A stretch of DNA of 64,000 nt from Oculina patagonica (GCF_052425735.1 NC_135771.1:2914001-2978000), one strand, 5' to 3'; counted from the first letter of the stretch, positions 640-52,894 are shown. The notes: generated by a model from the letters alone, not told the origin. Program-made: numbers and translations.

Positions 640-3127
640 CATGCGGGCAGGTTGTTAATAACACCCTGACAAGTCCTGGATATCCCTACAATTACCCAAA
701 CAACATGGACTGTGTTTATTGGGTCCCTATTCCAGCTGGCAAGGCAATGAATATTTACTTCAGCGAATTTTACTTGGAGCGTTCTTCGACCTGCCGGTAA
801 GAAACGAGATAACAATCAAAATATATCCATGGAGTGAATATAAATCACTGATTAGGTCAATTCTTATTTTTTTGTTTCCACCACTTCGTTTAATGATCTA
901 AATGGATGTTTTTTCAGTGCTCAGTATATCTTACCTTTTTTCAAAACAAATTAAAATAAGCTTCAAAGTTGTAAAAACATTATGATGCAAGAAAGAGAGT
1001 ATGAAGTTGATCCCCTCTTGTGCGTAAACTAGTTTATTATTAAGCTAATGGTTCACACAAAAATTCGCTTGCCGTTGGTTGTTTTAGCGAGCATTAAAAT
1101 GATATGCAGAGAAAGATAGCACTAGGCTACCGATAGTTTGTCTTCATAATTTTGTTGTGTGCCAGGATTACTACAGTTTTGAAGGGTTAATTATCCAAAC
1201 ATTAGACTCTTTTTGTAAAATCTTCAGAAATATTTTGTCTTTCTCTTATATTACTGTTTGTTACAGCGTACAACCACCATATGCAGCAGAAAAATCTGTA
1301 AGACAGATTTTGAGCTATTTTAAAATAGGCAAAATACCACATTTTCTTATTTTGCGAAAAATTTATCTTACAGATTTGTATTTTATTTTGCATGAATGTT
1401 TAATCAGAGCCAATCTCTAATTCCTGGAATTTTGAGGTGGGGGTCATATGTTTAGATTTTGAGAAAACAGACGTCGTTCATTTTGGCTGTTTATTAGCAT
1501 TTTTATTCTTCCAATGTCGCATATGATGATTGTGCACAGTAGCAAACAGCAATAAGAGGAAGAAAAAACATTTCTGAAGATTTTACAAAAGAGTATAAAA
1601 TTGGGCTCATTTACCCCCTCAAAACCGTTATGTCTGATAGCAGAAACCGATAAGGTTTTTTGACGATATTCAACAAAGCAATCCTCATTGCTAGCCCGCA
1701 TAAATTTCTCATGGCATTGGTTCGAAGACTCTGTCAAACAATCAATTAATTTGGTGATCACCTTCTCAAATTATTATGGCTTATTTTATTCGCAGCTGGG
1801 ACTATTTGGAGATCACCAACGAAAACAATCAGACATTCGGGAAATACTGCGGCTCTAAATCTGGATTGACCGTCGTTGTAACTGGACAATACGTTGTGTT
1901 AAAGTTCCACTCTGACGGATCTTTTACCCTCAAAGGATACCGGTTAACTTTCACTGCCCTCTGTGAGTACGGTCACAGCGGATATGGTATTGACCAATTC
2001 CGAAAGTAATTTAAATTATTCACCGAAGTGGATGTGAATAATTGTTAATTCACTGACACAGAGGTGAATAATAATTGTTTAAGTATATACCACACAAGTT
2101 GAATAACTAGCGGACTAAAACACTTTCGGTAGACAAAGCGACACGGCCAGGCAGTTTGTTTCTCGTTAGCTGCTTGGAGGTGAATAGTACTTTGTAAGTC
2201 ACCTCCGAGTTTACCAAACAGCGCACGCGAAAAGCACTTTTTACTTGTGTGGTATATACTTACTACTGTTAAAGCGGTTTTAACTTGAGTGCCGAAAGTA
2301 ATTTGCGTTTGCTTTGGTTTTGCATTGCTACGCCCATTAATTGGTTTAAAAATCTCTCGCCCCTTTTCAGAAAATCAGAACCAAAACCAAAACCAATCGT
2401 GTCTCGCTCGCGCACGTTTTCCCGCGCTTCGTGCCGGCTGCATATATTGCTTCGAGTTTTGATTGGTTGACTGGATTGTCTATGTCCTTTGTGATTGGCT
2501 AGAGTGATTACTATGGTTTTGGATTTACGACACTCATTTGAAAACTGCACTAATTTTTGTCGCCCAGTTGAAACATATAGAATATATCTGTATGGAGTTT
2601 TAAAAGAAAATTAATATCATTTTGCTGTGTATAATTATGGTTTGCTGCGTTTATTATTCACTATTTTTCCGCCTTGTTTGTCTTAGCTCCAGGAAATATC
2701 AGCACATCAGCACCAAACACGACTAATCCACCATCCAGTAAGTATAGCAGGTTCGCCAGTAGACCGTGTGTGCTCAGCATTTTACCCCAAGAAAATCAAT
2801 GATTGGGTGCCCTATGATTCCATAACTAAAGAGGTAACATTTCTGGTAAATCTTTCTAAATATTTTACACGACCTCCACTCTAGCGCTCATCTTCTTCCA
2901 ACAGACACGGAACGCAGGAATTGATGTTTCTCCTAGTACTTTACCTTTGTAGAGAACTATACTGCTTTTGTTTTACGAATTGGTGTCAGTTGATCCAAAA
3001 GACTTATATCAGCTGTATAAATTTGGTTGTGTATATCTTGTCTTTTTAGTTTATTAACACTGCTATTTGATTCTTGTAGACTACACAACTAGTCCGCCTC
3101 CGCCAACTACCACCTCACCACCAAGCG
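640..3127 (+). CDS. CUB cassette unit 1 (exons A, B, linker C, linker D)
   Basis: A: CGQVVNNTLTSPGYPYNYPNNMDCVYWVPIPAGKAMNIYFSEFYLERSSTCR; B: WDYLEITNENNQTFGKYCGSKSGLTVVVTGQYVVLKFHSDGSFTLKGYRLTFTAL; C: PGNISTSAPNTTNPPS; D: YTTSPPPPTTTSPPS. Confidence 0.9.
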
Positions 3128-6100
3128 GTAAGATGGAAATTATTTTACTGACCCACGGTCGGAGCAGCTATGACTCCCACGAGGAGTTCTAAACTGGAAA
3201 CGATACAATCCATTGTTAGAAACTCACAACAACGTAAAATAATTGGTTGCTTGCTCGAACACTCGATTGTTTCGTTAAGTGGTAAGGTTACTTAGCTGTT
3301 AGCTCTGCTAAGGTTGTGAGGAGGGGGGTAGGGTTGGACGTGAAGTATTTTCTCACAGTGGTGGAGGCGAGGGTACCCTGCTGGGCTGGGTCGCTATGAT
3401 TCCTTAATTCACGTGTTGTTCTGCAACAAAAGCGCGAATTTTTTTTCAAATAACACAGGCGCTTTTGAAACGCAGACTTTCTTTCCGATGCTGTCGTATG
3501 TTCTCTTGGGGGCTTATTTCTTTTTCAGACCTTTTGAGGGGCGGGAAGGGAGGGGGGGGGACTACAGGGGTGACTAAAGAGGAGGGGGCTTAATAAGTCT
3601 TTTACGGTAAGTGCCCCTCCCTCTCCCCTAATTTCTTGCGTAGATGTCATCTGGGCTGGTCAGGCGTTTTTCCCAAATCCTGAAGGGAAAATAGCATGAC
3701 GATCCCAAAGCAACTCTGCGTAGGAGGCCACCCTTTCCCCGATTACAAGGCTCCCTCACTCAAAAAGAACCTTAATTGTAAGAAAATAAGCCCAAAGCTT
3801 ATAATCAGGATTTTAAGGGGCATGATGTGAGCGCAAATATTAAAAGATATTTTTTTGCTTTATAGTATGCGGGCAGGTTGTTAATAACACACTGACAAGT
3901 CCCGGATACCCAAACAATTACCCAAACAACATGGACTGTGTTTATAGGGTCCCTATTCCAGCTGGCAAGGCAATGAATATTTACTTCAACGAGTTTGTCG
4001 TGGAGTATCAGATATACTGCAAGTAAGGAACGAAATAACAAGCAAAATATATCCATGGAGTGAATAGAAATCACACTGATTACGTCAGTAACATTTTTAT
4101 TTTTTGTTTCCACCACTTCGTTTAATGATCTTAATGGGTTTTTCCAGTGCTCAGTATATCTTACCTTTTTTTCAAAGTGAATTAAAATAAGCTTCAAATT
4201 TGTAAAAACATTATGATGCAAGAAAGAGAGTATGACGTTGATCCCCTCTTGTGCGTAAACTAGCTCATTATTAAGCTAATGGCTCACATAAAAATTCGCT
4301 TGGCGTTGGTTGTTTTAGCGAGCATTAAAATGATATGCAGAGAAAGATAGTACTTGGCTGCCGATAGTTTGTCTTCATAATTTTGTTGTGTGGCAGGCTT
4401 ACTACAGTTTTGAGGGGTAAATTAGCCAAACATTTAAATCTTTTTGTAAAATCTTCAGAAAAATTTTGTCTTTCTCTTATTGCTGTTTGTTACAGCGTAC
4501 AGCCACCATATGCGGCAAAAAAATCTGTAAGACAGATTTTGAACTATTTTAAAATAGGCAAAACACCACATTTTCTTATTTTGCGAAAAAATTATCTTAC
4601 AGATTTGTATTTTATTTTGCATGAATGTTTAATCAGAGCCAATCTATATTTTCTGAAATTTTGAGATGGGGTCATATGTGTAGATTTTGAGAAAACCGAC
4701 ATTTAAACCGGGTACTAGTGCCCAGTCCTTTCTTAAGCACTCGGTCGTTCATTTTGGCTGTTTATTAGCATTTTTATTGTTCAAATGTCACATATGATGA
4801 CTGTGCGCAGTTACAAACAGCAATAAGAGAAAGACAAAACATTTCTAAAGATTTAACAAAAGAGTATAAAGTTGGGCTCATTTACCCCCTCAAAACCCTT
4901 ATGTCTGATAGCAGAAGCCGATAAGGTGTTTTTGCCGATATTCAACAAAGCAATCCTCAGCTCGGGAAAAACTAGAAGCATTCTATGAAGAGAAAACAAA
5001 AGGAATAATTATACGTGCACGTGCCCGATGGCACGAACATGGTGAAAAAAGTACAAAATATTTCTTGAACTTAGAGGAAAGAAATCATGTCAAGAAATGT
5101 ATACGAAAATTATACATTAATGGTGTAATTAACACAGATCCGACTTACATTTTAAGGGAACAGGAACGTTTTTATTGTGATTTATATAAAAGTGGCAATA
5201 ACGATCCAGACATTGCCCTAAAAAGGTCCACCTTTTTAGGTGATTTAAATATACCCAAACTTTCCGAGGAACAGAGAAGAGAGTGTGAGGGTAAAATCTC
5301 GCTAGAAGAATGTTCTTGTCTCCTTGATAGCTTTCGCGATAACAAAACACCAGGAAACGATGGCATTCCTATTGAATTCTATAAAAAATTCTGGCCTCTA
5401 ATTGGCGACAGTTTTATAAGATGTGCAAATGAGTGTTTTGAAAAAGGTGAGTTGTCCTGCTCCCAAAAACAAGCGGTGATCACTCTTATCGAGAAGAAAG
5501 GAAAAGATCGCTCACTCCTTGAAAATTGGCGCCCAATTTCCCTTGTTAATGTTGATACGAAAATTATGTCAAAAGTAATAGCTTCAAGAATTAAAAATGT
5601 TTTACCCGAGATTATTCATCACAACCAGACAGGATACGTCAAGGATCGCTTTATAGGCGAAACTGTTCGATCTATTTACGATGTAATGGACTACACTGTC
5701 GAAGAAAACATCCCAGGCCTCATGATTTTTATTGATTTCAAAAAAGCATTTGACAGTGTAGAGTGGGATTTTCTTTTGAAATGCCTAGAAGCTTTTAATT
5801 TTGGCCCAGACTTCATTCGCTGGGTCAAAACGTTTTATAAAAACATACAAAGCTGCACCATTAATAATGGTACTACGACCAAGTATGGACTGAAGTCTGT
5901 AAGATACTGGGCGGCGAACGCCTGGAATCAACTGCCAGACCGAGTAAGAACAATTGCTACACTACAGGCCTTTCGTAATGCTGTGCGCAGCTAGATAGTC
6001 CCTTTTTAATTTTAAAATTAATTTAATACTTATTTATTAATGAATTTTTCGTTCTGTATATATTTTTACATTTGTAATTTATTTTCTCGGCATATTAGCA

Positions 6101-9100
6101 TATGTTTTGCTAGGGGCCTAGCCAGCCCCCGTCAGCTCCGAGGGTAAATAAATTTTATTGATTGATTGATTGACTGCTTCACGATATTTTACGCTCGAGC
6201 GAGGTGTCCGGCAGGGAGATCCACTCTCCCCTTACCTTTTTATATTAGTCGTTGAAACTCTGGCAATCGCTATGCGTCAAAACAAAAGTATTAAAGGAAT
6301 AATGATCGAGAACGAGGAAACTAAGCTTTTACAATATGCAGATGATACAACTGCAGTGCTCTCAGACATTAATTCAGCAGAAACATTGTTTGAGTTATTG
6401 GATAGTTTTAAAGCGATTTCGGGACTTGAGATAAACTGTACAAAAACCGAAGGCATGTGGATTGGATCATCTAAGGAAAACAAAACGAAACCCTTCGGAA
6501 TCAAATGGCCGAATGAACCGATTAAGGCCCTTGGAGTGTATTTCACTTATGATCAGAAACTGCTTAAAGAAAAGAATTTCATTGAAAGATTGGACAGCAT
6601 CAAAAAGCTTATCAACATTTGGTCCTCAAGAGGCCTATCAATTTACGGAAAGGTGACAATTATAAAATCATTTCTAATCCCAAAATTTGTTTACACATGC
6701 TCGCTTTTGCCCACACCTAACGAATTGGTTAAACAATTGAATCAATTGCTATTTAAATTCCTGTGGAAAGGAACAGACAAAGTAACACGCTTGTCAGCAA
6801 TAAATGAATATGGGAAAGGTGGCCTAAAAATGATCGACCTAGAGAACATGGTTAAATCTTTAAGATTAGCATGGCTAAAACGAATATTTAATGGCAATGA
6901 TGGAACATGGAAGCAGTACTTAAAACACCAATTAAAATCCATTGGGGGTCTTTTCTTTTTTAATTGTAACTACGATGTTAACGATTATACAATCTCTTCC
7001 CAGTTTTATCGTGAACTGTTATTGTGGTGGTCGCAATTCCGCGAAAATTTTGCTACCGAAAGGAACTGGCAAAACATCATTTGGAATAACAAAGAAATAC
7101 GAATAGACAACAAGCCTGTTTATTACAAAAATTATGTTGAATCTGGAATCATCTGTATAAAGGATCTGCTATTCAATTTAAACAATATTGACTCCTTTGA
7201 CCGCGTTTCATATAAAATAAGTAAAACTAATTTTTTACAATGGGCAGGCCTTCGCCACTCTATACCCAACCTTTCAAAAGGTAGATATGCATGCCCGTCA
7301 CTTACATCTCCTTCATTCTTCATTGACCACAACATCTTCGACGTGAAGAAAAAGAAATCAAAAGATTATTATTCGCTTCTTGTTATGAACAAAGCACAGC
7401 CTCCTAATATTGTTCATAAATGGAAAAGCGATTTCAATATTTCGGATGATCAACTACGAGAATTTTTCACATTACCTCATTCCGTTGTACTCGAATCATA
7501 TGTAAAGGCCTTTCAGTACAAAGTACTTAACAATATTCTTTACACGAACACGAAATTACACAAAATTGGTTACAGAACAAATGATTTATGTACTTTCTGT
7601 GAGGCGGAACCAGAAACTTTGTATCACTTTTTTTACCAGTGCTCCCGCGTCAGGCAGTTTTGGAATGATTTTGAATCTTACTGGTACCTCTTATCAAATC
7701 AAGTAGTTCGTCTTACTTTGCAAAACGTTTTGTTTGGAATAATATCAAAACAATGCCCTTCACTTGATTTACTAAATTATTTTATTATTATTGGAAAATT
7801 GTTTTTGTGGGACTGCAGAAGAAACCAAACATATCCTAAAATTCAAGGTTATCAGAACAAAATACTTACTAAATATGAAACTGAAAAGAAAATTAATAAG
7901 AAAAGATATTTCGAAAAGAAGTGGATATATTCTCCCAGATAATAAGTAAGGAATTATAGTGCTAGATTCGCTTTTTTTTTTTTTTCGTGTGTTTGTTGCT
8001 TATTTCTCTTTGTTGCGTGTATTAATTTCGATTATTAAAAGTCCAAACTATTGATGTAAACTTGCTATATGGAAATTATTATCATCTGTTACTTAATTGT
8101 AAATTAACACTTGTTACTTTTTTTTATTCCAATCACCTATGTAATGCTAAGTGTGTAAATATCAATAAAGGAAAAAATTAAAAAAAAAAAAAAAAACAAA
8201 AAAAAAACAAAGCAATCCTCATTGCTAGTCCGCATAAATTTCTCATGGCATTGGTTCGAAGACTCTGTCAAGGAATCAATCAATTTGGTGATCATCTTCT
8301 AAAAATTATTATGGCTTATTTTATTCGCAGCTATGACTATTTGGAGATCACCAACGAAAACAATCAGACATTTGGGAAATACTGCGGCTCTAGATCTGGA
8401 TTGACCGTCGTTGTAACTGGGCAATACGTTGTGTTAAAGTTCCACTCTGATCGCTCTTTTACCTACAAAGGATACCGGTTAACTTTCAGTGCTTTCTGTA
8501 AGTACGGTCACATACAGCGCATATGGTATTGACCCATTCCGAAAAGAATTAACAATTATTCACCGAAGTGGACGTGAATAATTGTTAATTCACTGACACT
8601 GAGGTGAATAATAGTTGTTTAAGTAAGTCTTTAAGTATATACTACACAAGTTGAATAACTAGCGGACTAAAACACATTCGGTAAACAAAGCGACACGCCA
8701 AGGCAGTTTGTTTCTCTTTAGCTGCTCAGAGGTGAATAGTACTGAGCTAATTGCCTCCGAGTTTACCAGTTAGCGCGCGCAAAAAGCACTATTCACTTGT
8801 GCGGTATATACTAACTACTGTTAATTTTTGTCGCCCAGTTGAACCATATAGAATATATATATCTGTATCCACCACCAGTAAGTATAGTAGGTTCGCCAGT
8901 AGACCGTGTGTGCTCAGCATTTCACCCCAAGTAAAAAAAAAATGATTGGATGCCTAATGATTCCATAACTAAAAGAGGTTACATTTCTGGTAAATCTTTC
9001 TAAAAATTCTACACGACCTCCACTCTAGCGCTCATCTTCTTCCAACAGACACGAAACGCAGGAATTGATCTTTGTCTTTTCGTTTTACGAATTGGTGTCA

Positions 9101-12100
9101 GTTGATCCAAAAGACATATATTAGCTGTATAAATTTGGTTGTGTATATCTTGTCTTTTTAGTTTAATAAGACTGCTATTTGATTCTTGTAGACTACACAA
9201 CTAGTCCGCCACCGCCAACTACCACCGCACCACCAAGAGGTAAGATGGAATTTATTTTAACTTACTAACAGTTACTGACCTACGGTCGGAGCAGCTATGA
9301 CTCCACGAGGAGTTCTAAACTGGAAACGATACAATCCATCCTTAGAAACTCACAACAACGTAAAACAATTGGTCGCTTGCTCGAACACTCGTTTGTTTCG
9401 TTAAGTGGTAAGGTTACTTATCTGTTAGCTCTGCTAAGGTTATGAGGAGGGGGAAGGGTTGGGGGTGAAGTACTTTCTCACCGTGGTGGAGGCGAGGGTA
9501 CCCTGCTGGGCTGGGTCGCTATGTTTCCTTAATTCACGTGTTGTTCTGCAACAAAAGCGCGAATTTTTTTTTCAAATAACACAGGCGCTTTTGAAACGCA
9601 GACTTTCTTTCCGATGCTGCCGTATGTTCTCTTGGGGGCTTATTTCTTTTTCAGACCTTTTGAGGGGCGGGAAGGGAGGGGGGGGGGGACTACAGGGGTG
9701 ACTAAAGAGGAGGGGGCTTAATAGGTCTTTTACGGTAAGTGCCCCTCCCCTAATTTCTTGCGCATGCGCAGATGTCATCTGGGCTGGTCAGGCGTTTTTC
9801 CCAAATCCTGAAGGGGAAAATAGCATGACGATCCCAAAGCAACTCTGCGTAGGAGGCCACCCTTTCCCCGATTACAAGGCTCCCTCACTCAAAAAGAACC
9901 TTAATTGTAAGAAAATAAGCCCAAAGCCTATAATCAGGATTTTAAGGGACATGATGTGAGCGCAAATATTAAAATATATTTTTTTGCTTTATAGTATGCG
10001 GGCAGGTTGTTAATAACACACTGACAAGTCCCGGATACCCAAACAATTACCCAAACAACATGGACTGTGTTAACTGGGTCCCTATTCCAGCTGGCAAGGC
10101 AATGAATATTTACTTCGACGAGTTTGTCGTGGTGTATGGATGGAGGTGCCGGTAAGAAACGAGATAACAATCAAAATATATCCATGGAGTGAATAGAAAT
10201 CACACTGATTAAGTCAATAACATTTTTATTTTTTGTTTCCACCACTTCGTTTAATGATCTTAATGGGTTTTTCCAGTGCTCAGTATATCTTACCTTTTTT
10301 TCAAAGTGAATTAAAATAAGCTTCAAATTTGTAAAAATATTATGACGCAAGAAAGAGAGTATGAAGTTGATCCCCTCTTTTGCGTAAACTAGCTCATTAT
10401 TAAGCTTATGGTTCACATAAAGAATTCGCTTGCCGTTGGTTGTTTTAGCGAGCAAATGATATGCAAAGAAAGATAGTACTTGGCTGCCGATAGTTTGTCT
10501 TGATAATTTTGTTGTGTGGCAGGCTTACTACAGTTTTGAGGGGTAAATTAGCCAAATATCTAAATGTTTTTGTAAAATATTCAGAAATATTTTGTCTTTC
10601 TCTTATTGCTATTTTTTGAGCTATTTTAAAATAGGCAAAACACCACATTTTCCTATTTTGCGAAAAAACTGTTTTCCAGATTTGTATTTTATTTTGCATG
10701 AATGATTAATCAGAGCCAATCTCTAATTTCTGAAATTTTGAGATGTGAAATGTTTAGATTTTAAGAAAACCGACGTTAAAACTACTAGTGCCCAGTTCTC
10801 TCTTAAGCACTCGGTCGTTCATTTTGGCTGTTTACTAGCATTTTTATTGTTCAAATGTAGCGTATGATGGTTATACGCAGTAACAAACAGCAATAACAAA
10901 CAGCAAAGAAAGAGAAAACATTTCTGAAGATTTTACAAAAGAGTTTAAAGTTGGGATCATTTTCCTCCTCAAAACCCTTATGTCTGATATCAGAAGCCCA
11001 TAAACTGTTTCTGCCGATATTCAACAAAGCAATCCTCCTTGCCAGTCTTCAAAGAGTTCTCAGGTATATATAGGTATGTGCCGCTGTACATGTGAAGGGT
11101 ATGGGTTTCAAGCAGTTTAGTCTGGGATAGGGTACAGAATAAGAGAGTTTTGGTCTAGAATAGGGTATCATTTGCCGGGAAACTGATCAGTGGTATGAAG
11201 AATGAAGTCCAGAATAGGAATAAAATCTCGGAAGAGAAAGAGGCTTTCCTAAACGTAAATAAAATCATCGCGGCAACGTCGCTGACAGATGGTTTTCAAA
11301 AACACTAAATAGTGATACAGTTCTAAATTAAAAAAGCAAGTATGTGATAGGGTAGGGATTTCTGGTGTCCAGTCTGGTATAGGGTTGCAAAATCAGCTGA
11401 ACATGGTCTGGTATAGGGTAAGGGTTTCAGAGTCTTAGCGGCACACCCTCAGCCCCCCAAAAAGAATACCCCCCTCCCCGGGTGGTTCGAAGACTCTGAC
11501 AAAGAATCAATTAACTTGGTGATCATCTTCTCAAATTATTATGGCTTATTTCCTGCGTAGCTATGACTATTTGGAGATCACCAACGAAAACAATCAGACA
11601 TTCGGGAAATACTGTGGCTCTAGATCTGGATTGAACGTCGTTGTAACTGGACAATACGTGGTGATAAAGTTCCACTCTGACGCGTTTGTTACCAACAAAG
11701 GATACCGGTTAACTTTCAGTGCCTTCTGTAAGTACGGTCACAGCGCATATGGTATTGACCCATTCCGAAAAGAATTAACAATTATTCACCGAAGTGGACG
11801 TGAATAGTGGAGGATATTTACCTCGCCGCGACTGACTTGTTTTAGTACATACCACACAAGTTGAATAACTAGCGGACTAAAACACTTTCGGTAAACAAAG
11901 CGACACGCCAAGGCAGTTTGTTTCTCTTTAGCTGCTCGGAGGTGAATAGTACTTTGTTAATCACCTCCGTGGTAATCAATCAGCGCGAAAAGCACTAGTC
12001 ACTTGTGTGGTATATACTAACTACTGTTAATTTTTGTCGCCCAGTTGAAACATATAGAATATATATCTGTATCCACCATCCAGTAAGTATAGCAGGTTCG

Positions 12101-15100
12101 CCAGTAGACCGTGTGTGCTTAGCATTTCACCCCAAGAAAAACAAATGAGTGGTTGCCTAATCATTCCATAACTAAAATGGTGACATTTCCAGTAAATCTT
12201 TCTAAAAATTCTACACGACCTCCACTCTTGCGCTCATCTTCTTCCAACAGTCACGAAACGCAAGAATTGATGTTTCTCCTAGTACTTTTCCTTTGTAGAG
12301 AACTATATTGTTTTCGTTTTACGAATTGATGTCAGTTGATCCACAAGACTTATATTAGCTGTATAAATTTGGTTGTGTATATCTTGTGTTTTTAGTCTAA
12401 TAAGACTGCTGTTTGATTCTTGTAGACTACACAACTAGTCCGCCACCGCCAACTACCACCGCACCCGGTAAGATGGAATTTATTTTAACTTACTAACAGT
12501 TACTGGCCCTCGGTCCGAATCTATATTATCTTCCCACGCGGAGTTCTAAACTGGAAACGATACAATCCATTGTTAGAAACTCACAACAACGTAAAATAAT
12601 TGGTCGGGATGGTCGGGAGTTGGGGGTGAAGTATTTTCTCACAGTGGTGGAGGCGAGGGTACCCTGCTGGGCTGGGTCAGTATGATTCCTTAATTCACGT
12701 TGTGTTCTGCAACAAAAGCGCAAAATTTCTTTCAAATAACACAGCCGCTTTTGAAACGCAAATTTCTTTCCGATACTGCCATGTAAGCTCTAGGGGGCTT
12801 ATTTCTTTTTAAGACCTTTTGAGGGGCTGAGGGGGGGGGGGGGGGGGACTACAGGGGTGCTTAGAGAGGAGAGGCGCTTAATAGATCTTCTACGGTAAGT
12901 GCCCCTCCCCCTCCCCTAATTTCTTGCGCAGATGTCATCTGGGCTGGTCAGGCGTTTTTCCCAAATCCTGAAGGGAAAATAGCATGACGATCCCAAAGCA
13001 ATTCTGCGTAGGAGGCCACCCTTTCCCCGATTACAAGGCTCCCTCACTCAAAAAGAACCTTAATTGTAAGAAAATGAGCCCAAAGCTTATAATCAGGATT
13101 TTAAGGGACATGATGTGAGCGCAAATATTAAAATATATTTTTTTGCTTTATAGTATGCGGGCAGGTTGTTAATAACACACTGACAAGTCCCGGATACCCA
13201 AACAATTACCCAAACAACGCGGACTGTGTTAATTGGGTGCCTATTCCAGCTGGCAAGGCAATGAATATTTACTTCAACGAGTTTGTCATGGAGTATCACT
13301 GGAGCTGCCGGTAAGAAACAAGATGACAATCAATTGCAAAGTATATCCATGGAGTGAATAGAAATCACACTAATTACGTCAATAACATTCTTATTTTTTG
13401 TTTTCACCACTTCGTTTAATGATCTAAATGGATTTTTCACCAGTGCTCAGTATATCTTACCTTTTTTCAAAGTGGATTAAAATGAGCTTTAAATTTGTAA
13501 AAACATCATGAGGCAAGCAAGAGAGGATGAAGTTGATCCTCTTTTGTGTACGACATTAAGCGTAAACTAGCTCATTATTAAGCTAATGGTTCACATAAAG
13601 AATTCGCTTGCCGTTGGTTGTTTTAGCGAGCCAATGATATACAGAGAAAGAAAGTACTAGGCTGCCGATTGTTTGTCTTATATTTTTTTGTGTGGCCGGC
13701 TTACTACAGTTTTGAGGGGTAAATTAACCAAACATTTAACTCTTTTTGTAAAATTTTCAAAAATATTTTGTCTCTCTCTTTCTCTCTTACAGCATTCAAA
13801 CACCATATGCAGCAAAAAATCTGTAAAGGCCGATTTACACGGTACGATTTTGTCGAATGCGATATGCTTGCAACATGTTTACGACAGGCCTACGACACGA
13901 ATTGTGACGTGTAAATCAAACCTACAACTCGCTTACGACTGTCGCAGGCGTGTCGTAAGCTTCTCGCATGCGACAAAATCGTACCGTAAAAGATAAGATA
14001 AGATAAGAAACTTTATTTAAGTGTCAAAGCCTTATAGCCTGGAAAATAAAACCATACTAATTAAGGGACACTGCTAAAAACTAAAAGCTACACTAATACT
14101 AAATATAAATACAATAAAAATATATATAAGTCATATAAAAAATGTTATTATAATCTATGGTGTAAAAAATGTTAAAATCTTATAATAATGTTTTGACTTG
14201 AGAGGCACTAAGTGCAGCATAGGATGCATCCCTTACAGCCGCTGTCCATTAAGGGAGTTATATCTTTTTTGCGAATACGGTTTGTGAAAGCCTGCAGAGT
14301 CTTGGCTGATCTGTCAGCCGTAGAAAGTTTTCCCCATAGTTTGGGTCCTACATAACGCAAAGAGTGCTTTCCATAAGTAACAGTGTTGTATCTAGGAGTA
14401 GAAAAATCTGATTGTCTCAGGTTATACGTGGAATTATGCTCGTTAAAAATGTTACAGATGCTATTTGGACATAATCTATGTTTAACTTTATACATTAAGG
14501 CCGATTTACCGTGTAAATCGGCCTTAAGACAGATTTTGAGCTATTTTAAAATAGGCAAAACACAACATTTTCTTAATTTGCGAAAAATGTATCTATCAGA
14601 TTTGTATTTTATTTTGCGTGAATGTTTAATCATAGACAACCTATAATTTCTGAAATTTTGAGATCAAATGTCCAATGTTTAGATTTTGAGAAAACCGACG
14701 TTGTTCATTTTGGCTGTTTATAAGCATTTTTATTCTTCCAATGTCGCATATGTTGATTGTGCGCAGTAACAAACGGCAATAAGAGAAAGACAAAACACTT
14801 CTGAAGATTTAACAAAAAAGTTTAAAGTTGGGATCATTTACCCCCTCAAAACCCTTATGTCTGATAGCAGAAGCCCATAAGGTGTTTCTGCCGATGTTCA
14901 ACAAAGCAATCCTTCTTGCTAGCTTGCTAGTCTGCATAAATTTCTCATGGCATTGGTTCGAAGACTCTGTCAAACAATCAATCAATTTGGTGATCACCTT
15001 CTCAAATTATTATGGCTTATTTTATTCGCAGCTGGGACTATTTGGAGATCACCAACGAAAACTATCAGACATTCGGGAAATACTGCGGCTCTAAATCTGG

Positions 15101-18100
15101 ATTGAACGTCGTTGTAACTGGACAATACGTTGTGTTAAAGTTTTACTCTGACGGCTCTAATAGCTACAAAGGATACCGGTTAACTTTCAGTGCTTTCGGT
15201 AAGTACGGTCACAGCGCATATGGTAATGACCCATTCCGAAAATTATTAACAATTATTCACCGAAGTGGAGGTGAATAATTGTTAATTCACTGACACAGAG
15301 GTGAATAATAATTGTTTAAGTATATACCACACAAGTTGAATAACTGGCGGACTAAAACACTTTCGGTAGACAAAGCGACACGGCCAGGCAGTTTGTTTCT
15401 CTTTAGCTGCTTGGAGGTGAATAGTACTTTCTAAATCACCTCCGAGTTTACCAAACAGCGCGCGCGAAAAGCACTATTCACTTGTGTGGTATATACTTAC
15501 TACTGTTAGAGCGGTTTTAACTTGAGTGCCGAAAGTAATTTGCGTTTGCTTTGGTTTTGCATTACTACGCTCATTAATTGGTTTAAAAAACTCCCGCCCC
15601 TTTTCAGAAAATCAGAACCAAAACCAAAACCAATCGTGTCTCGCTCGCGCACGTTTTCCCGCGCTTCGTGCCGGCTGCATATATTGCTTCGAGTTTTGAT
15701 TGGTTGACTGGATTGTCTGTGTCCTTTGTGATTGGCCAGAGGGATTACTATGGTTTTGGTTTTACGACACTCATTTGAAAACTGCACTAATTTTTGTCGC
15801 CCAGTTGAAACATATAGAATATATCTGTATAAAGTTTTAAAGCTATATTTATGAAAAGTCACAACTTTGCAGTCTTTATTTTAACGGTACACTTTAAAAC
15901 TTCAGAATATCAGATTTTTTAATTTATTTTTTATTATGAAGTGATAATTTAAAAGAAAATTAATATGTTGCTGTGTATATGGTTTGCTGTGTTTATTATT
16001 CACTATTTTTCCGCCTTGTTTGTCTTAGCTCCAGGAAATATCAGCACATCAGCACCAAACACGACTAATCCACCATCCAGTAAGTATAGCAGGTTTGCCA
16101 GTAGACCGTGTGTGCTCAGCATTTCACTCCAAGAAAATAAATGATTGGGTGCCTAATGATTCCATAACTAAAGAGGTAACATTTCTGGTAAATCTTTCTA
16201 AATATTTTACACGACCTCCACTCTAGCGCTCATCTTCTTCCAACAGACACGGAACGCAGGGATTGATGTTTCTCCTAGTACTTTACCTTTGTAGAGAACT
16301 ATACTGCTTTTGTTTTACTAATTGGTGTCAGTTGATCCACAAGACTTATATCAGCTGTATAAATTTGGTTGTGTATATCTTGTCTTTTTAGTTTAATAAG
16401 ACTGCTGTTTGATTCTTGTAGACTACACAACTAGTCCGCCATGGTATACCACCGCACCACCAAGTGGTAAGATGTAATTTATTTTAACTAATACTAACAG
16501 TTACCGACCCACGGTCCGCATCTGAAAATTAACTCCTCATGAGAAGTTCTAAACTGGAAACGATACAATCCATTGTTAGAAACTCACAACAACGTACGTA
16601 AATAATTGGTCGCTTGCTCGAACACTCGTTTGTTTCGTTAAGTGGTAAGGCTACTTATCTGTTAGCTCTGCTAAGGTTGTGAGGAGGGGGGTAGGGTTGG
16701 ACGTGAAGTATTTTCTCACAGTGGTGGAGGCGAGGGTACCCTGCTGGGCTGGGTCGCTATGATTCCTGAATTCACGTGTTGTTCTGCAACAAAAGCGCGA
16801 ATTTTTTTTTTCAAATAACACAGGCGCTTTTGAAACGCAGACTTTCGTTCCGATGCTGCCGTATGTTCTCTTGGGGGCTTATTTCTTGTTCAGACCTTTT
16901 GAGGGGCGGGAAGGGAGGGGGGGACTACAGGAGTGACTAAAGAGGAGGGGGCTTAATAAGTCTTTTACGGTAAGTGCCCCTCCCTCTCCCCTAATTTCTT
17001 GCGTAGATGTCATCTGGGCTGGTCAGGCGTTTTTCCCAAATCTTGAAGGGAAAATAGCATGACGATCCCAAAGCAATTCTGCGTAGGAGGCCACCCTTTC
17101 CCCGATTACAAGGCTCCCTCACTCAAAAAGAACCTTAATTGTAAGAAAATAAGCCCAAAGCTTATAATCAGGATTTTAAGGGACATGATGTGAGCGCAAA
17201 TATTAAAATATATTTTTTTGCTTTATAGTATGCGGGCAGGTTGTTAATAACACACTGACAAGTCCCGGATACCCAAACAATTACCCAAACAACATGGACT
17301 GTGTTTATTGGGTGCCTATTGCAGGTGGCAAGGCAATGAATATTTACTTCAACGAGTTTGTCGTGGAGCATCACTGGAGCTGCCGGTAAGAAACGAGATG
17401 ACAATTAAAGTATATCCATGGAGTGAATATAAATAACACTGATTAGGCCAGTAACACCCTTTTTTTTTTGTTTCCGCCACTTCGTTTAATGACTAAATGG
17501 ATTTTTTCTCCAGTTCTCAGTATATCTTACCTTTTTTCAAAGTGCATGAATTAAAATAAGCTTCAAAGTTGTAAAAACATCATGAGGCAAGCAAGAGAGG
17601 ATGAAGTTGCTCCCCTTTTGTGTACGACATTAAGCGTTAAGTAGCTCATTATGAAGCTAATGGTTCACATAAAAATTTGCTTGGCGTTGGTTGTTTTAGC
17701 GAGCATTAAAATGATATGCAGGGAAAGATAGCACTACTAGTAGGCTGCCGATAGTTTGTCTTCATAATTTTGTTGTGTGCCAGGCTTACTACAGTTTTGA
17801 GGGGCAAATTAGCCAAACATTTAACTTTTGTTGTAGAATCTTCAGAAACATTTTGTCTTTCTCTTATATTACTGTTTGTTACAGCGTACAACCACCATAT
17901 GCAGCATAAAAATATCTGTAAGACAGATTTTGAGCTATTTTAAAATAGGCAAAATACCACATTTTCTTATTTTGCGAAAAATTTATCTTACAGATTTGTA
18001 TTTTATTTTGCACGAATGTTTAATCAGAGCCAATCTCTAATTTCTAAATTTTGAGGTGGGGGTCATATGTTTACATTTTGAGAAAATAGACGTCGTTCAT

Positions 18101-21100
18101 TTTGGCTGTTTATTAACATTTTTATTCTTCCAATGTCGCATATGATGATTGTGCACAGTAACAAACAGCAATAAGAGGAAGAAAAAACATATTCTGAAGA
18201 TTTTACAAAAGAGTATAAAATTGGGCTCATTAACCCCCTCAAAACCCTTATGTCTGATAGCAGAAGCCGATAAGGTTTTTTGACGATATTCAACAAAGCA
18301 ATCCTCATTGCTAGTCCGCATAAATTTCTCATGGCATTGGTTCGAAGACTCTGTCAAACAATCAATTAATTTGGTAACCACCTTCGCAAATTATTATGGC
18401 TGATTTTATTCGCAGCTATGACTATTTGGAGATCATCAACGAAAACAATCAGACATTTTGGAAATACTGTGGCTCTAAATCTGGATTGAACGTCGTTGTA
18501 ACTGGACAATACGTTGTGATAAAGTTCTACTCCGACGCGATTGTTACCCGCAAAGGATACCGGGTAACTTTTAGTGCTATCGGTAAGTACGGTCACATAG
18601 TCCGGCGGCTTAGCTCGAAATTTTAGTTGAATTGTGCACTTTTTGATACAAGCATGCAACTTGGCACAATGAAAGTGGTCACCAACAGAAGATTTTTCAG
18701 ATATAGTGCCAAGCCCGAAATACGCCAGTTTCCATGGAAACCGTAATTTATTAAAATCAATGGAATTTCGTGAAAGCTCGTGAAATATTTGTTTGTCCTT
18801 GTTTATAGACAAATACTTTTATGCCAGGTAGTGATACCAAGTCGCACGTACAAAATTTAGAATGAAATGCTGTAATTTAGACTGTTCACAGCCCTCTATA
18901 TTTTCCTATTTTTCTTCTGTTAGCGAGCGGCGAACGCTGGGATTGGAGAATGAATCCTGAGAGACCTGGACGCTAGCGCAAAACGAAAGACGCGAGGGGC
19001 AGAGGGCGGGGAACAAAAAATCTTTTTCCATGCAATAACTTTATAGTAAAAATTATTGGTTAAAGATGGTTAAAAAATAACAATTGTAAGCCTAATTTAA
19101 AGCATTCATATCTGTATTTTTGAAATAAAATCTACAATAAAAAGTGTATAAAAGCACAAGAAGAAGTAGTTCGTGGGGGAGGGGCCTCTTGGCTGAAAAT
19201 TTCATTGCTACTTACTAGCTGAAAATAGGAAATTAGCGTTGGCACTATATCGAGAATTGATTAGTATGTGAATGCTTGAATCCTGCAAAGTTTGGTGCTT
19301 GTATCAAAAATCGCACAATTCAGGAGCTAAGCCGCCGGACTAACAGTGCATATGGTATTGACCCATTCCGAAAATAAGTGACAATTATTCACCAACGTGG
19401 AAGTGAATAGTGGTGGGTAATTACTGACACTGAGGTGAATAATTGTTTTAGTATATACCACACAAGTTGAATAACTTGCGGACTAAAGCACTTTCGGTAA
19501 ACAAAGCGACACACCAAGGCAGTTTGTTTCTCTTTAGCTGTCCCGAGGTGAATAGTACTTTGTTAATCACCTCCGAGTTAACCAATCAGCGCGCGCGAAG
19601 AGCACTATTCACTTGTGTGGTATACACTTACTGCTGTTAATTTTTGTCGCCCAGTTGAACCATATAGAATATATATCTGTATCTACCATCCAGTAAGTAT
19701 AGTGTGTTCGCCAGTAGACCGTGTGTGCTCAGCATTTCACCCCAAGTAAAAAGATAATTGGATGCCTAATGATTCCATAATTAAAGAGGTAACATTTCTG
19801 GTAAATCTTTCTAAAAATTCTACACGACCTCCACTCTAGCGCTCATCTTCTTCCAACAGACACGAAACGCAGGGATTGATCTTTGTCCAAGTACTTTTCC
19901 TTTGTAGAGAACCATATTGTTTTCGTTTTACGAATTGGTGCCAGTTGATCCAAAAGACTTATATCAGCTGTATAAATGTTTTTGTGTAGTTATTGTCTTT
20001 TTAGTCTAATAAGACTGCTGTTTGATTCTTGTAGACTTAAACACAACTAGTCCGCCATTGCATAACACCACACAACCAAGCGGTAAGATGGAACTTATTT
20101 TAACTTACTAACAGTTACTGACCCACAGTCCGAACCTATATTATCTTCCCACGAGGAGTTCCAAACTGGAAACGATACAATCCATTCTTAGAAACTCACA
20201 ACAACGTAAAATAATTGGTCGTTTGCTCGAACACTCGTTTGTTTGATCTGGTAAATTATGAAACCGAGATCGAGGCTTCAATACGTTTTTTGGCAAGTTT
20301 GGCATGTAACCTTCATAACAAATCGGTCAGTTCTAGGTTGCTAGACGGAATTCTCAAAATTGTCAATTATGTTATTAACAATGCACAGATGACAATATCA
20401 CAGAATTGTGAAGTCACTGAAGAGCTACTAACAGGAATGATAGTGACGTCATACCACATGTGGGTTTCGTCCAATGGTCTTTTGAGCTGTGGTTGATTGA
20501 TTGTGTCACTTATTACTCACAACTGTATAGATTGCCTAGGCGATCATTCCTCAATTTACAGCATTTACTGATTTACGCCGTGACTACTTTGTGTTGTGAT
20601 AAGTTCGCTTCTGTTAAAACCCGTAAAACCGAACAGTTAACCTCCTTATTAAAGTTTTTTTCAATTTTATCCGCCCTGGTTTACTGCATCACCACCAAAC
20701 ACTAACCGCAAACTGCACCCTGTGTGATATATAGTTTCTCTTTATCTAAATAAAACCAGTCGTGTTATTTGTCCTTATTAATTAAATTAGTTTGCGTTGA
20801 AGTTTGTTTTTTATTGTGCGTGTAAGGAACTCAAACTATTCGCCCTAGTCTACCATATATATTACCACCAAAGGGCATTAAATAAAATAAAAAATTGAGA
20901 ATTTACAACGGCATCTTCCACATAGTGATTCCAGATCAGTGATTCTAAATTGGAATTTAGAAGTGTTGGTTTTTGTGGAGGGAGGAAAACCGGAGAACCC
21001 GGAGAAAAAACCTCGGAGCAAGGACGAGAACCAACAACAAACTCAACTCACACATAACGCCGGGTCTGGGGATCGAACCTGGGCCACATTGGTAGGAAGC

Positions 21101-24100
21101 GAGCGTTCTCACCACTGCGCCATCCCTTCTTCATTTTTATCTCGATTTTAACTATAGACTGCCGTATCACATCATAACAGTTCTTCTTAATAATAATTGT
21201 TTTTTTATTTTTTTATAGGCGGATGTGGATATGTGCAAAACAACACACTTACTAGTCCTGGATATCCAAACAACTATCCGAATAACATGGACTGTACTTA
21301 TTCGATCCACATCCCACACGGCAAGGCGTTAAGAATTGTTTTCGAATTTTTTAAAGTGAACGACTGCGGGTAAGTAACTACGTACGAACGCTTCATGGGA
21401 AATGACCATCAAGTTCGTTGAAATATAAAAATAACCTCTTAAAACAGTGAAAGAACATTTCAATAACACACCAAATACAAAAGAAGGTACGGATGGCCAA
21501 ATGCGACGAAGATTGAAACGGATTGCGATACTCGGGTTTTTGAAATATTGTTGGGCTAAACAGTTATCAAAAGTTAATCTTGTTTGTTTGTAAATTTAAA
21601 TTCTAACGACCGGGAGACACATTTGGTTGCAGTGAAGCAATGGTTTTGTCATTTAGATCCATAGAAGTAATTTCTTTGCAAACATAAAGTTTCATAGCGA
21701 GTATTTGGCAGAACTTAATAAAATAAACTAACTCAGCCGTGACACAGTCCCTTTATCTGATATGAACACATCACTAGCTATTGCCGCAGAGAACAGGAAA
21801 TGAGAACTTAACGTGCATTGCCTAGCTGCCATCATATCCTTAACCAGGGCCTTGCCGTCTGCCTCTTGCTAGTTACGGCCCTGCCTTAACCAAGCAGTAA
21901 GCGTGAGATTAACATGTTTCGTAATATAAATGAAGCAAATAGACCCCAACTTACACATTCCTTTTTTTAAAAACCACAGCTTTGACTATTTGAGGATCAC
22001 TAACGAGAGAAACCAGACACTTGGAGAGTTCTGTGGAAATAAATCTGGACATGATGTAACTGTGTCTGGACATTACGCCGTGATAACCTTCCATTCAGAT
22101 AGCTTTGTTACTGACCAAGGATACAAGCTGTATATCTTTTTTTCATACGGTAAATCATATTGATTTAATTCATAAGAAGAAAGCAAAACTTCTCCAGTGA
22201 AACGGGAAAAGAGAACTAAGTGTCTTGTTAAAGAAAATCGGACAAACGCAGACTAATACAAACTACTTTCTACCAACGTAAACTTATAAAAAAGGGGCAG
22301 CTTCAAGCCAAGTGGCGCATACTGCCGGAGCGGAATATTTCTACTCTCCCCTGGATGGGATGCTAGTTCGTCGCAGGGTCCCCCCCCCACCCCATAGCAT
22401 TATTTCGCCGGTCCGGCGCGCTTATTATTAGGCCACTGCGCCTCCCACTACGAAAACTTATAAACAGATGTTTCATTTGACTCTGCAAAAGATCGTGATT
22501 GCTTCTTTATGTTACTCTTTTAGGAAATTTAATAACCCAAACGGTATGAAAATAATTTCAAGTAGATTTTTTACTGATGAAAAACGGTCTAAAATACATC
22601 GGAGATGTATTTTAACAACATAAAATTTTAAGCTTGGTTCAAATGAGTATTGGAGCATTTAATATGCTTGAGTTTCATTTTTTGTCCTGTTATTTATGCA
22701 GGAAATGCCAGCACTTCTCTCCCATGGACGACTTATCCACCATACAGTGAGTGTGTTATAGTTACCAATGTCGAAAAATGAATGTTGTTGACCGCTTACG
22801 TGTAACTCCCACAAATAAACTGCATCTTTCGCTATTTTAAAGATTATACCAAAAGAATATACTGATTGGGCATTGAGGCGACAATGTCTAAAATGTTATC
22901 TAAAACAGGAGAGAAACATATTGCGGTTTTCAAAAACATGCTTACTCTGAAATTCAAGACTCAACTAACGATTGCGTTCTTCGCTGTCGTCAATCAGGCA
23001 ACGAACCTTGAAAAACAGAAACAAACAAAATAGATCGAAATCCACCAATCACAACTGACAGACATGACATTTTGAACCGGTTGAAGTGATGATTGACGGC
23101 AGCAAAAAACGTAAACCGTTGGGTATGATTTGAACTTCAGAGTTCGCATATCTTTGAATACTGCAATAAAGTTAGTTTGCGCAGTACTTGATTCATCACG
23201 AAAATTGGCATCAGTTATCTTGTGTCATGGTCTCTTGTAATATAATTATCAACAGGTTTTCAATTTTGAGACCTCTGAGAAAATACTTTGGCCCTCAATA
23301 ACTTTTTTTTTTGTAAATTTATTACATTTCTGTATTGCTGGTTTTCACTGTCACGCAATCAAAAAATAAATTCGAAACCATTCAACTACAGAAGCTATGA
23401 ATTTCAAATATTATAGATGTTAAATATATAAACACTTTCTTCAAGTTTCGGGTCTGTGCGGTGTACCGTTCGCGAGTTATTTTCCGAACTTTTCCACGTA
23501 AATTTATAAACCTTAGTATGGAGCCGCCATAACTGTGTCCTGCCGAGGGACACAGTAATGGCCGCCGTGATGTCAGAGAAACCATCTGGAACTCAATTCT
23601 GTTTACAACAGCGGCCATCCTTGGCTTAAGAGCTAGTACACTTTCACATAAACACCACTTATTATATCTGAATTGTTCATTCTGCACAAAATGGAAAGGA
23701 AAGGCCTTTTTTCAAACAAAACAGCTTTGTCACGGCACTCAGCTTGATGTCACATACGACGGAGAACTCAAATATTCAAAATGCTCTGTTTTAAAAACGA
23801 ATGACACTATCGATCTGGAAATTTGCAAAAATATATATTTTTAGTTTATCTTTCGCCTAATGACAACGAAAATTTAGCACGCGTAGTGAATTTTGATTTC
23901 AGAATTTTATGACGTAACATAAAAACCAAGAATACAGGCTAGGTCTTGGCGGATTGTGCTCCTAAACGTGGCATATTATGCTACCAGCAGCTGTGCTCCA
24001 AATTTTGCCAAACTGATTATGCCCAAATTATGCTCCTGATTTCCGAAACTATGCTCATAAAATGATGTAGATCCTGTACAAAGAGGCGCGCAATAACGGC

Positions 24101-51968: not shown

Positions 51969-52894
51969 GTGATACACAAGACAGTCCCCTGACAACCTGG
52001 AGTGCCCTTGCGTTAGGTTCAACGGCCTGGTGGTGTTTCAAGAAATTTTGTCTTTCTTCAATCCCTTTTTTAGCCTCTTAAAATTTTATTCAAATTAAGG
52101 TATAATGCCCCTTCAAGTGATGTACATGGCATGGACGTAAAGGGATTGGGACGACCCACCTCGTCTCGCAGATCTCTTACCGGAGAGAAAGTGACCGAGT
52201 TGTGTTAGAAAAGGTTACCCAGTTTAGGAAAGAAGCTTGAAGTAAAACGTCTTTCGCAAAATTTTTCGTCGCTTTAGAGCGGTTTTCACTTGAGTGTCGA
52301 AAGTAAATTGCCGTTTGCTTTGGTTTTGCATTGCTACGCTTAGTGATTGGCTTAAAAATCTCGCGGCACTTTATTAGCCAATCAGAAGTAAAACCAATAC
52401 CAATCGTGACTCGCTCGCGCACGTTTTCCCGCGCTTCGTGCCGGCTACATGTATTTGCTTCAAGTTTTGATTGGTTCACTAGATTGTCTGTGTCCTTTGT
52501 GATTGGCCAGAGTAATTACTTTGGTTTTGGTTTTACGACACTCAATTTGAAAACTGCTCTAATCTTTTCCACGATACGTTGCAGCAAGGATCTAGGTTCC
52601 TTGCGTGACACTTCTAGAGTAACACTTGTCGTGTTTCGTGCAATAAAGTCTCATAAAAGCGCAACAGAATTACGGGACAAGAATATGTTACATAAATGGT
52701 GTGTTATTTTTTTCACCTTAACGTTATCAGCGTTATGCAAGAATTTTGTCCACTCTTAGATGTTTCCCTCATACCCAGCCTCGTACTCAGTCGTCCCCGG
52801 CGAATTTGGATGTGACGTCACCCGCCAAGCTAGCGCGGTATGGCCTGGGGACGAGGCTGCCTCATACCCCCCTTTTTCCCCGGGAGCAGCAAAG

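Follow-up and report, generated by a model that had tools for sequence, protein, structure and literature searches.

Loop-focused diversification of a tandem CUB-domain array in the coral Oculina patagonica, a candidate multivalent binding protein

A stretch of 64,000 nucleotides (nt) from the coral Oculina patagonica (GCF_052425735.1, NC_135771.1:2914001-2978000; hereafter the window, with positions counted from its first letter) contains the 3' two-thirds of a "cubilin-like" gene that is both annotated and expressed. Its region 640-22149 holds five two-exon CUB cassettes of one kind (type 1), one diverged CUB of a second kind (type 2), and short Thr/Pro linker exons. The type-1 cassettes have diverged most densely in two short loops, L5 and L9, around a predicted Ca2+ site, and mainly by amino-acid replacement; as read from the sequence, this is the pattern that one would look for in a protein whose task is to recognise a range of partners. 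We consider it probable that the gene encodes a secreted multi-CUB protein whose type-1 binding surfaces are kept or driven apart by selection, and that its product is a multivalent binder of varied ligands. The gene itself was already annotated; the new part is the loop-focused diversification of its tandem CUB array, which is undescribed in the literature that we searched. That search returned no paper tying Oculina to the "cubilin-like" gene, nor any that describes hypervariable CUB loops in corals.

Divergence focused on the loops of a putative calcium site

By self-comparison, the cassettes measure about 3.1-4.1 kb each, with one stretched to 6.1 kb by a long interspersed nuclear element (LINE), and are 80-93% identical over introns and exons. 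Each consists of exon A (157 nt), which starts in phase 1, ends in loop L5 and leaves in phase 2 at a C followed by the donor GTAAG, and exon B (167 nt), which carries loop L9 and ends in phase 1. The two exons match the Pfam CUB profile (PF00431) at positions 9-54 and 57-110, respectively, both above the gathering score, and all cassette exons are open with canonical splice sites. All of them lie on the plus strand. Exon A of cassette 1, the N-terminal half of the CUB domain, occupies 640-796 with an intact frame, an AG acceptor and a GTAAG donor, and its L5 reads FYLERSSTC (codons 44-52 at 771-796, with codon 53 in exon B); exon B, the C-terminal half, occupies 1796-1962, with the L9 codons 93-97 at 1917-1931. 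Cassette 2 has exon A at 3866-4022 (L5 FVVEYQIYC, 3997-4022) and exon B at 8331-8497 (L9 RSFTY, 8452-8466). Cassette 3 follows at 9995-10151 (L5 FVVVYGWRC, 10126-10151, in which a Ca2+-ligand Glu is replaced by Val) and 11561-11727 (L9 AFVTN, 11682-11696), cassette 4 at 13154-13310 (L5 FVMEYHWSC, 13285-13310) and 15032-15198 (L9 GSNSY, 15153-15167), and cassette 5 at 17229-17385 (L5 FVVEHHWSC, 17360-17385) and 18416-18582 (L9 AIVTR, 18537-18551). A preliminary description of this DNA had quoted ten loop peptides, all of which lie on the plus strand where it placed them. It had also described a five-cassette CUB array reaching to 22149. The five cassettes were recovered, and the array is completed by a sixth CUB (CUB6, 21219-22149) of the other type, whose loops are conserved: its exon A (21219-21369) has the short L5 FKVNDCG and its exon B (21980-22149) the L9 HSDSFVTDQG.

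Mismatch rates were pooled over 23 long cassette-to-cassette alignments. They amounted to 0.080 in introns (n=21,304 sites), 0.058 in framework exon sequence and 0.106 in linker exons, compared with 0.316 in L5 (codons 44-53) and 0.347 in L9 (codons 93-97). Introns and framework had been called nearly identical, which overstates the case for the introns: these are about 92% identical on average and differ by about 8% (1-15% by segment), and framework codons differ by about 6%. The accompanying claim that loop changes are denser than intronic ones held when the divergence comparison was run. In five-way alignments, the minimum number of substitution steps per site was 0.207 in introns and 0.13-0.14 in the framework, against 0.92 in L5 (24 steps in 26 nt) and 0.93 in L9 (14 steps in 15 nt). 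The loops thus exceed the introns 4-4.5-fold in substitution density (Poisson P=3e-9 for L5 and 5e-6 for L9), and none of 249 ungapped intron windows of L5 size, and 5 of 409 of L9 size, reached the step count of the loop. Over the 22 loop codons, each pair of cassettes shows 10-18 nonsynonymous and 1.5-4 synonymous differences, in agreement with the earlier statement that the changes are mainly nonsynonymous. The locus also offers an internal control, since its six type-2 CUBs, which were compared at the protein level, keep both loops nearly invariant; within this family, free variation is therefore not an inherent property of L5 and L9. When metagenomes were scanned with exon A, the 80 loci found proved to be older coral paralogues (55-67% identical) without near-identical introns and were unusable for an intron-versus-loop test.

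The AlphaFold model of the CUB domain (predicted local distance difference test score, pLDDT, 97.4) places loops at residues 45-54 and 91-98. Foldseek comparison with the CUB domains of neuropilin, TSG-6, MASP, C1s and PCPE gave template modelling (TM) scores of 0.79-0.87 and root-mean-square deviations (rmsd) of 1.4-2.0 A; among solved structures the best match is cubilin CUB5-8 (3kq4, E=2e-47), and MASP, C1s and neuropilin also match. Residues E46, D54, D92 and S94 align to Glu216, Asp226, Asp263 and Ser265 of MASP-1 CUB2, which are Ca2+ ligands, three of which hold a lysine of the partner protein (PMC5300068). Alignment to cubilin and MASP together with the model loops thus supports the assignment of the two variable segments to the Ca2+-ligand loops L5 and L9, and, judged by these residues, the domain appears to belong to the Ca2+-binding CUB subset of the C1r/C1s/MASP/cubilin type. 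Because both loops share one Ca2+ ion in homologous structures, L5 should adjoin L9 in space, and the hypervariable residues 47-50 and 93-97 interleave with the Glu/Asp/Asp/Ser ligands. The ligand motif is complete in CUB1, CUB2 and CUB4; CUB5 has I94, and CUB3, with V46 and F94, probably lacks canonical Ca2+ binding. With loop boundaries taken from the model's secondary structure, as an independent definition, variable residues were enriched in L5 and L9 relative to other loops (13/18 versus 6/36, Fisher P=1.4e-4). The variable sites, mapped on the model as the preliminary description had proposed, are thus concentrated in the two loops.

By the method of Nei and Gojobori, the framework of the type-1 cassettes has proportions of synonymous and nonsynonymous differences (pS and pN) of 0.112 and 0.043 (ratio 0.39) and is under purifying selection. 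For the 22 loop codons, pS was 0.216 and pN 0.277, so that loop pN is 2.5 times framework pS. We also fitted codon models by maximum likelihood with our own script, using the three top-ranking topologies out of 15 possible ones. Both M1a versus M2a and M7 versus M8 gave twice the log-likelihood difference (2dlnL) as 13.7-16.6 (p=1e-3 to 2e-4), with omega, the ratio of nonsynonymous to synonymous substitution rates (dN/dS), at 4.5-5.6 for 12-14% of sites. The codons with posterior probability above 0.8 were 47, 48, 49, 50, 53, 95 and 97, all of them in L5 or L9. When the exons were tested separately, L5 gave p=0.0145. Positive selection at loop sites is thus favoured by the site models.

The cassettes are mosaics of one another. 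Between cassettes 2 and 5, divergence is 1.7% over the 350 nt that precede exon A but rises to 30% in L5 and is 11.8% in the downstream intron. The smallest difference in the sequence following exon A (3.8%) and exon B (1.6%) is that between cassettes 2 and 3, and in the sequence preceding exon B (1.1%) that between cassettes 1 and 4. L5 groups cassettes 4 and 5, and L9 groups 3 with 5 and 1 with 2. Nearest-neighbour relations therefore switch among upstream intron, L5, mid-domain intron, L9 and downstream intron, which is the result of recombination, gene conversion or unequal crossing-over between cassettes; the concerted evolution of the array that had been suggested is supported. L5 and L9 are separated by a mid-domain intron of 1.0-4.3 kb, and recombination in this long intron may re-pair L5 and L9 types, since CUB5 combines a CUB4-like L5 with a CUB3-like L9.

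Gene product and transcripts

In a half-domain search against 1.8 billion representative proteins, coral multi-CUB proteins ranked highest, and a second protein search showed that RefSeq "cubilin-like" isoforms of O. patagonica hold the window cassettes verbatim. When 22 exons of the window are spliced in silico, the translated sequence matches RefSeq "cubilin-like isoform X1" (XP_078353379.1) exactly over its residues 742-1507. The 5' cassettes of the locus are known from proteins. Isoform X1 begins with a signal peptide (residues 1-26) and a short propeptide with RPRR and KR sites and carries about ten CUBs, of which one type-1 and four type-2 domains lie upstream and cassettes 2-5 (type 1) and CUB6 (type 2) in the window. 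It has 33 N-glycosylation sequons and no epidermal growth factor (EGF) repeats, and consists of the signal peptide, the propeptide, the CUBs, Thr/Pro linkers and a Lys/Arg-rich basic helical tail with a furin-type RQKR site.

Linker exons are of two kinds, S1 (SPGNISTSAPNTTNPPS) and S2 (YTTSPPPPTTTSPPS-like). Every A+B pair, S1 exon and S2 exon runs from phase 1 to phase 1, so the phases are compatible throughout. S2 occurs in all five linkers and differs among them by in-frame 3- or 6-nt insertions or deletions only; S1 follows cassettes 1 and 4 and, in a diverged form, CUB6. Between cassettes 1 and 2 they lie at 2687-2737 (S1) and 3080-3127 (S2, the first window exon in isoform X1). S2 exons follow at 9192-9239 between cassettes 2 and 3, at 12426-12467 between 3 and 4 (with an in-frame 6-nt deletion), at 16422-16466 between 4 and 5 (with an in-frame 3-nt deletion, preceded by S1 at 16029-16079) and at 20035-20082 between cassette 5 and CUB6, and the S1-type linker after CUB6 is at 22702-22746. 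Five C-terminal exons (24793-24835, 25562-25607, 26529-26586, 27643-27786 and 28505-28572, all on the plus strand) encode the basic helical tail with its RQKR site, in a translation identical to the tail of isoform X1, with the stop codon at 28570-28572. Searches of this tail against Pfam and a protein atlas returned noise only.

Two earlier suggestions about the product were not supported. The molecule had been called a receptor, but the only 19-residue hydrophobic window in isoform X1 lies in the signal peptide. Since nothing else in the protein is hydrophobic enough and its basic tail carries an RQKR site, the product is predicted to be secreted without a membrane anchor of its own, and it may be anchored through a partner protein. 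The CUB domains had also been placed on mucin-like stalks, and what is found instead are short Thr/Ser/Pro linkers of 15-33 residues in the window and 15-46 residues in the whole protein (50-73% Ser/Thr/Pro).

It seems that the locus has two tandem 3' ends, the first of which is spliced across in RefSeq models, and that it may comprise one gene or two. The GenBank protein KAL9950434.1 finishes, upstream of the window, with one more type-2 CUB, the sixth, and with a C-terminal tail of its own; this paralogous tail, known from the protein, is about 90% identical to the window tail in the best-conserved exon.

Transcription of the exons, which had been left to be checked, was examined in contigs of four RNA runs from three coded organisms, compared with 9900-15899; the runs may stem from other individuals or species, and exon B of cassette 5 (B5) lies outside the compared stretch. 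Exon bins were covered and most unique intron stretches had approximately zero depth, while repeat-bearing intron stretches were covered too. Exon A of cassette 3 has RNA depth and its flanking intron almost none, and the word depth of CUB exons was 70-400. Joints with GT..AG borders connect B3 to S2 (11727 to 12426) in three RNA runs and A4 to B4 (13309 to 15031) in RNA run X26, and a further joint of this kind, S2 to A4, is present among the contigs. The exons are thus transcribed and spliced. In addition, the contigs hold two L5 variants beyond those matched, namely the cassette-1-like YLERSSTC and a new form, YLEYASNC, which differs exactly at hypervariable positions; the latter comes from another coded organism and gives a hint, at most, of polymorphism.

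Cassette 1 (640-1962) and its S1 exon (2687-2737) have open frames and canonical splice sites, yet none of the 19 RefSeq isoforms examined includes them; in these isoforms an upstream exon is joined directly to the S2 exon at 3080. A nearly identical cassette 1 loop was found in a contig of RNA run X19. In a contig of the same run, an exon A with YLERSSTC is joined to a cassette-1-type exon A start (CATGCGGGCAGG) at 13284 to 9996; this joint would shift the frame and could be mis-splicing or a back-spliced (circular) single-exon RNA.

RefSeq isoforms omit single cassettes, which suggests that the displayed CUB set can vary between transcripts, and in isoforms X14, X19 and X22 exon A of one cassette is joined to exon B of a later one. 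The locus might therefore be imagined as a splicing-based generator of repertoire, in which A/B hybrids make new two-loop binding sites, although we regard this as unlikely. If it were true, hybrid splicing and cassette skipping would amount to a small combinatorial "CDR" (complementarity-determining region) system on top of germline recombination and positive selection. In contigs of three RNA runs, an A4-type loop is joined to a start that is not B4 and resembles B3, which an assembly chimera or an allele could explain. We did not accept these joints as proof of hybrid splicing, because the A4 and A5 loops differ by 2 nt and assembly bubbles are possible. O. patagonica has at least 28 isoforms, and many cassette-skipping isoforms are also predicted in Acropora digitifera. 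Their occurrence in two distant genera reflects either a trait of the family or a systematic error in annotating repeat arrays.

Competing explanations for the loop divergence

In the mechanism that we favour, the five type-1 cassettes of the window are recent duplicates still exchanging sequence, in which the L5 and L9 residues flanking the Ca2+ site have changed at 4-4.5 times the intron rate, nearly always through amino-acid replacements. One secreted molecule could thus display several distinct Ca2+-dependent sites (CUB3 being probably Ca2+-independent) on flexible glycosylated linkers, and might bind, multivalently, extracellular ligands that are varied or evolve fast. Neutral relaxation of the loops is excluded, because they exceed the intron rate more than fourfold.

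Several points weigh against this account. Measured against the loops' own synonymous rate, loop dN/dS comes to 1.29; synonymous sites are few here, and pS in the loops is itself raised (0.216 versus 0.112 in the framework); for these two reasons retained old divergence is inseparable from accelerated change. The site models rest on five sequences that recombine, and recombination inflates such tests. L9 tested alone was not significant (p=0.17). Diversifying selection, as proposed beforehand, is hence favoured by M7 versus M8 (omega above 1) and for L5, and does not carry over to L9 taken alone. Cassette 1 is missing from all 19 of the RefSeq isoforms, and isoform models in repeat arrays can be mapping artefacts. 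Finally, the analysis covers the 3' part of the gene, the 5' part lying outside the window.

A role in matrix building or adhesion is a serious rival to recognition of immune, symbiont or gamete partners, and we hold it to be a genuine possibility, though not a likely one. The product would then be an extracellular or skeletal organic-matrix protein, or an adhesive one, with CUBs sub-functionalised for different fixed partners. The closest reviewed proteins are the "CUB and peptidase domain-containing protein 1/2" of Acropora millepora (45-46% identity, TM 0.98, rmsd 0.5-0.6 A), which we take to be skeletal-matrix proteins, and the automatic names of Acropora homologues include "exoskeleton protein RP43-like". 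Moreover, among the proteins identified in Acropora skeletons are secreted CUB proteins that have Thr-rich sequence specific to corals and have expanded in a lineage-specific way (PMC4890752). However, we found no family member with the conserved C-terminal tail that is named as a skeletal protein, and neither CUB nor cubilin proteins come up in the text of the paper on the skeletal proteome of O. patagonica. Fixed partners would also not predict faster-than-neutral substitution in recent duplicates.

The loops might instead be old. If conversion had homogenised introns and framework while the loops kept ancient differences, no selection for novelty would have to be invoked, an explanation to which we give a rather low probability. 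The mosaic relations prove that sequence is exchanged between cassettes, and loop codons show roughly double the synonymous divergence seen in the framework; the invariant codons embedded in the loops (E42, S91 and D92) carry three synonymous steps against about one expected, which is not significant. On the other hand, conversion homogenises the sequence within 100-150 nt on either side, so the escape of both loops in five of five cassettes needs selection, and selective removal of converted loops would still be selection for distinct binding sites. Replacement changes also far exceed silent ones. Whether the loops were replaced quickly or old divergence was shielded, selection for distinct binding sites follows in both cases.

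A local mutational process hitting both segments, such as a hotspot or templated micro-conversion from diverged paralogues, is very improbable. The changes are indeed clustered and multi-nucleotide, and the L5 variant YLEYASNC of the RNA contigs resembles LEYASSC of a paralogue on another chromosome. Nevertheless, no donor sequences were found within the window, and L5 and L9 lie 1.0-4.3 kb apart in DNA yet come together, by homology, around one Ca2+ site; selection on the protein, and not a DNA-level cause, is therefore indicated. Least credible of all, and already disfavoured, is that the loops are unconstrained surface loops of redundant recent duplicates, or that the cassettes are decaying: although L5 and L9 vary across CUB domains generally and the Glu and Ser ligands of Ca2+ are missing from CUB3, a divergence 4-4.5 times that of introns is beyond the reach of neutral sites, the framework dN/dS is 0.39, the type-2 CUBs of the same locus hold their loops constant, and the exons are open, have canonical splice sites, are spliced into RNA and are joined by linkers whose insertions and deletions are all in frame.

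Other elements, significance and comparison with known systems

The intron between exons A and B of cassette 2 contains a degenerate LINE-type retrotransposon (4912-7939, plus strand; RVT_1 at E=8e-22 and 9e-13, and zf-RVT), whose reverse-transcriptase frame is broken into two open reading frames; the other cassettes lack this insert. We set aside the GenBank model KAL9950436.1 as wrongly annotated, since its protein start falls inside this reverse-transcriptase frame. An interspersed repeat of about 290 nt lies outside the gene product, in the intron between exon B and S1 of cassettes 1 and 4 (2269-2558 and 15506-15795), with further copies at 52274-52567 and, on the minus strand, 29797-30015. 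Its summed RNA word depth is 23,000-135,000, compared with 70-400 for CUB exons, and it has no match to an Rfam family or a tRNA; it is an abundant transcribed repeat of unassigned kind. In addition, a minisatellite with a 45-nt period, about 18 copies and higher-order periods of 107-267 nt was observed at 37234-38362.

Corals must sort symbionts, microbes, neighbours and gametes, and to our knowledge they have no adaptive immunity and few candidate variable recognition molecules. The CUB module described here bears the genetic signature usual for gamete-recognition proteins and immune lectins, namely a homogenised framework, hypervariable binding loops, within-domain recombination and modular transcripts. 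It thus offers a concrete, testable candidate in a coral that is facultatively symbiotic and amenable to laboratory culture, and the same analysis is applicable to related arrays in Acropora, Montipora and Pocillopora.

Cubilin, a receptor that binds many ligands through Ca2+-dependent CUBs, has 27 CUB domains, eight EGF repeats and an N-terminal coiled-coil or amnionless-binding region. Like cubilin (3KQ4), the coral protein has tandem Ca2+-type CUBs with Glu/Asp/Asp in L5 and L9 and no transmembrane segment of its own; unlike cubilin, it has about ten CUBs, no EGF repeats and no amnionless-binding region, and it carries Thr/Pro linkers and ends in a basic tail that is specific to corals and contains an RQKR site. 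We rejected a cubilin orthologue because the EGF repeats and the amnionless-binding region are absent; the RefSeq name is automatic. In the CUBs of MASP-1/-2 and C1r/C1s, the Ca2+ site is the same as E46/D54/D92/S94 of Oculina and its ligands bind a partner lysine, but those domains are single-copy, conserved and protease-associated, and their loops are not diversified in a tandem array. The A. millepora proteins B8V7S0 and B8VIV4, which contain the nearest reviewed CUB domains, are likewise coral-specific secreted CUB proteins; by name they carry a peptidase domain, whereas the Oculina product shows CUB repeats, linkers and tail only, and no tandem type-1 array or loop hypervariability is described for them.

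Homologues in other corals include "cubilin-like" XP_068727412 of Montipora, "exoskeleton protein RP43-like", "cubilin-like" and "tolloid-like 2" proteins of Acropora, and "DMBT1-like" of Pocillopora. They share CUB repeats, Thr/Pro linkers and a conserved C-terminal tail (RQKR or QQKR), and the full-length Montipora and Pocillopora models open with a hydrophobic signal-like segment. The number and types of CUBs differ by coral genus, and many isoforms are predicted among these homologues. The 13 repeats of the Montipora homologue vary most in L5 and L9, as compared at the protein level, and the Acropora muricata homologue has three identical repeats without the Ca2+ motif.

The closest working analogue is the sperm bindin of the oyster Crassostrea gigas. 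According to a review (PMC5712786, covering Moy et al. 2008), bindin has one to five tandem F-lectin repeats with positive selection clustered on the binding pocket, and a mid-domain intron of variable size lets recombination make new domain combinations. The same review reports that alternative splicing sets the repeat number, that some repeats have lost canonical binding residues and that a retroposon lies in the gene. The two systems differ in fold (F-type lectin versus CUB), phylum and ligand chemistry, and the sperm location and intraspecific polymorphism of bindin have been shown experimentally, whereas the Oculina array is known from sequence and RNA contigs. The two work alike: the Oculina array has tandem recognition domains in one gene, selected sites clustered at the binding site, a variable mid-domain intron in each cassette, recombination between repeats, some ligand residues lost and a retroposon inside. 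Two hallmarks of the bindin system, positive selection clustered on the binding surface and recombination that re-pairs domain halves, are both found in the Oculina cassettes.

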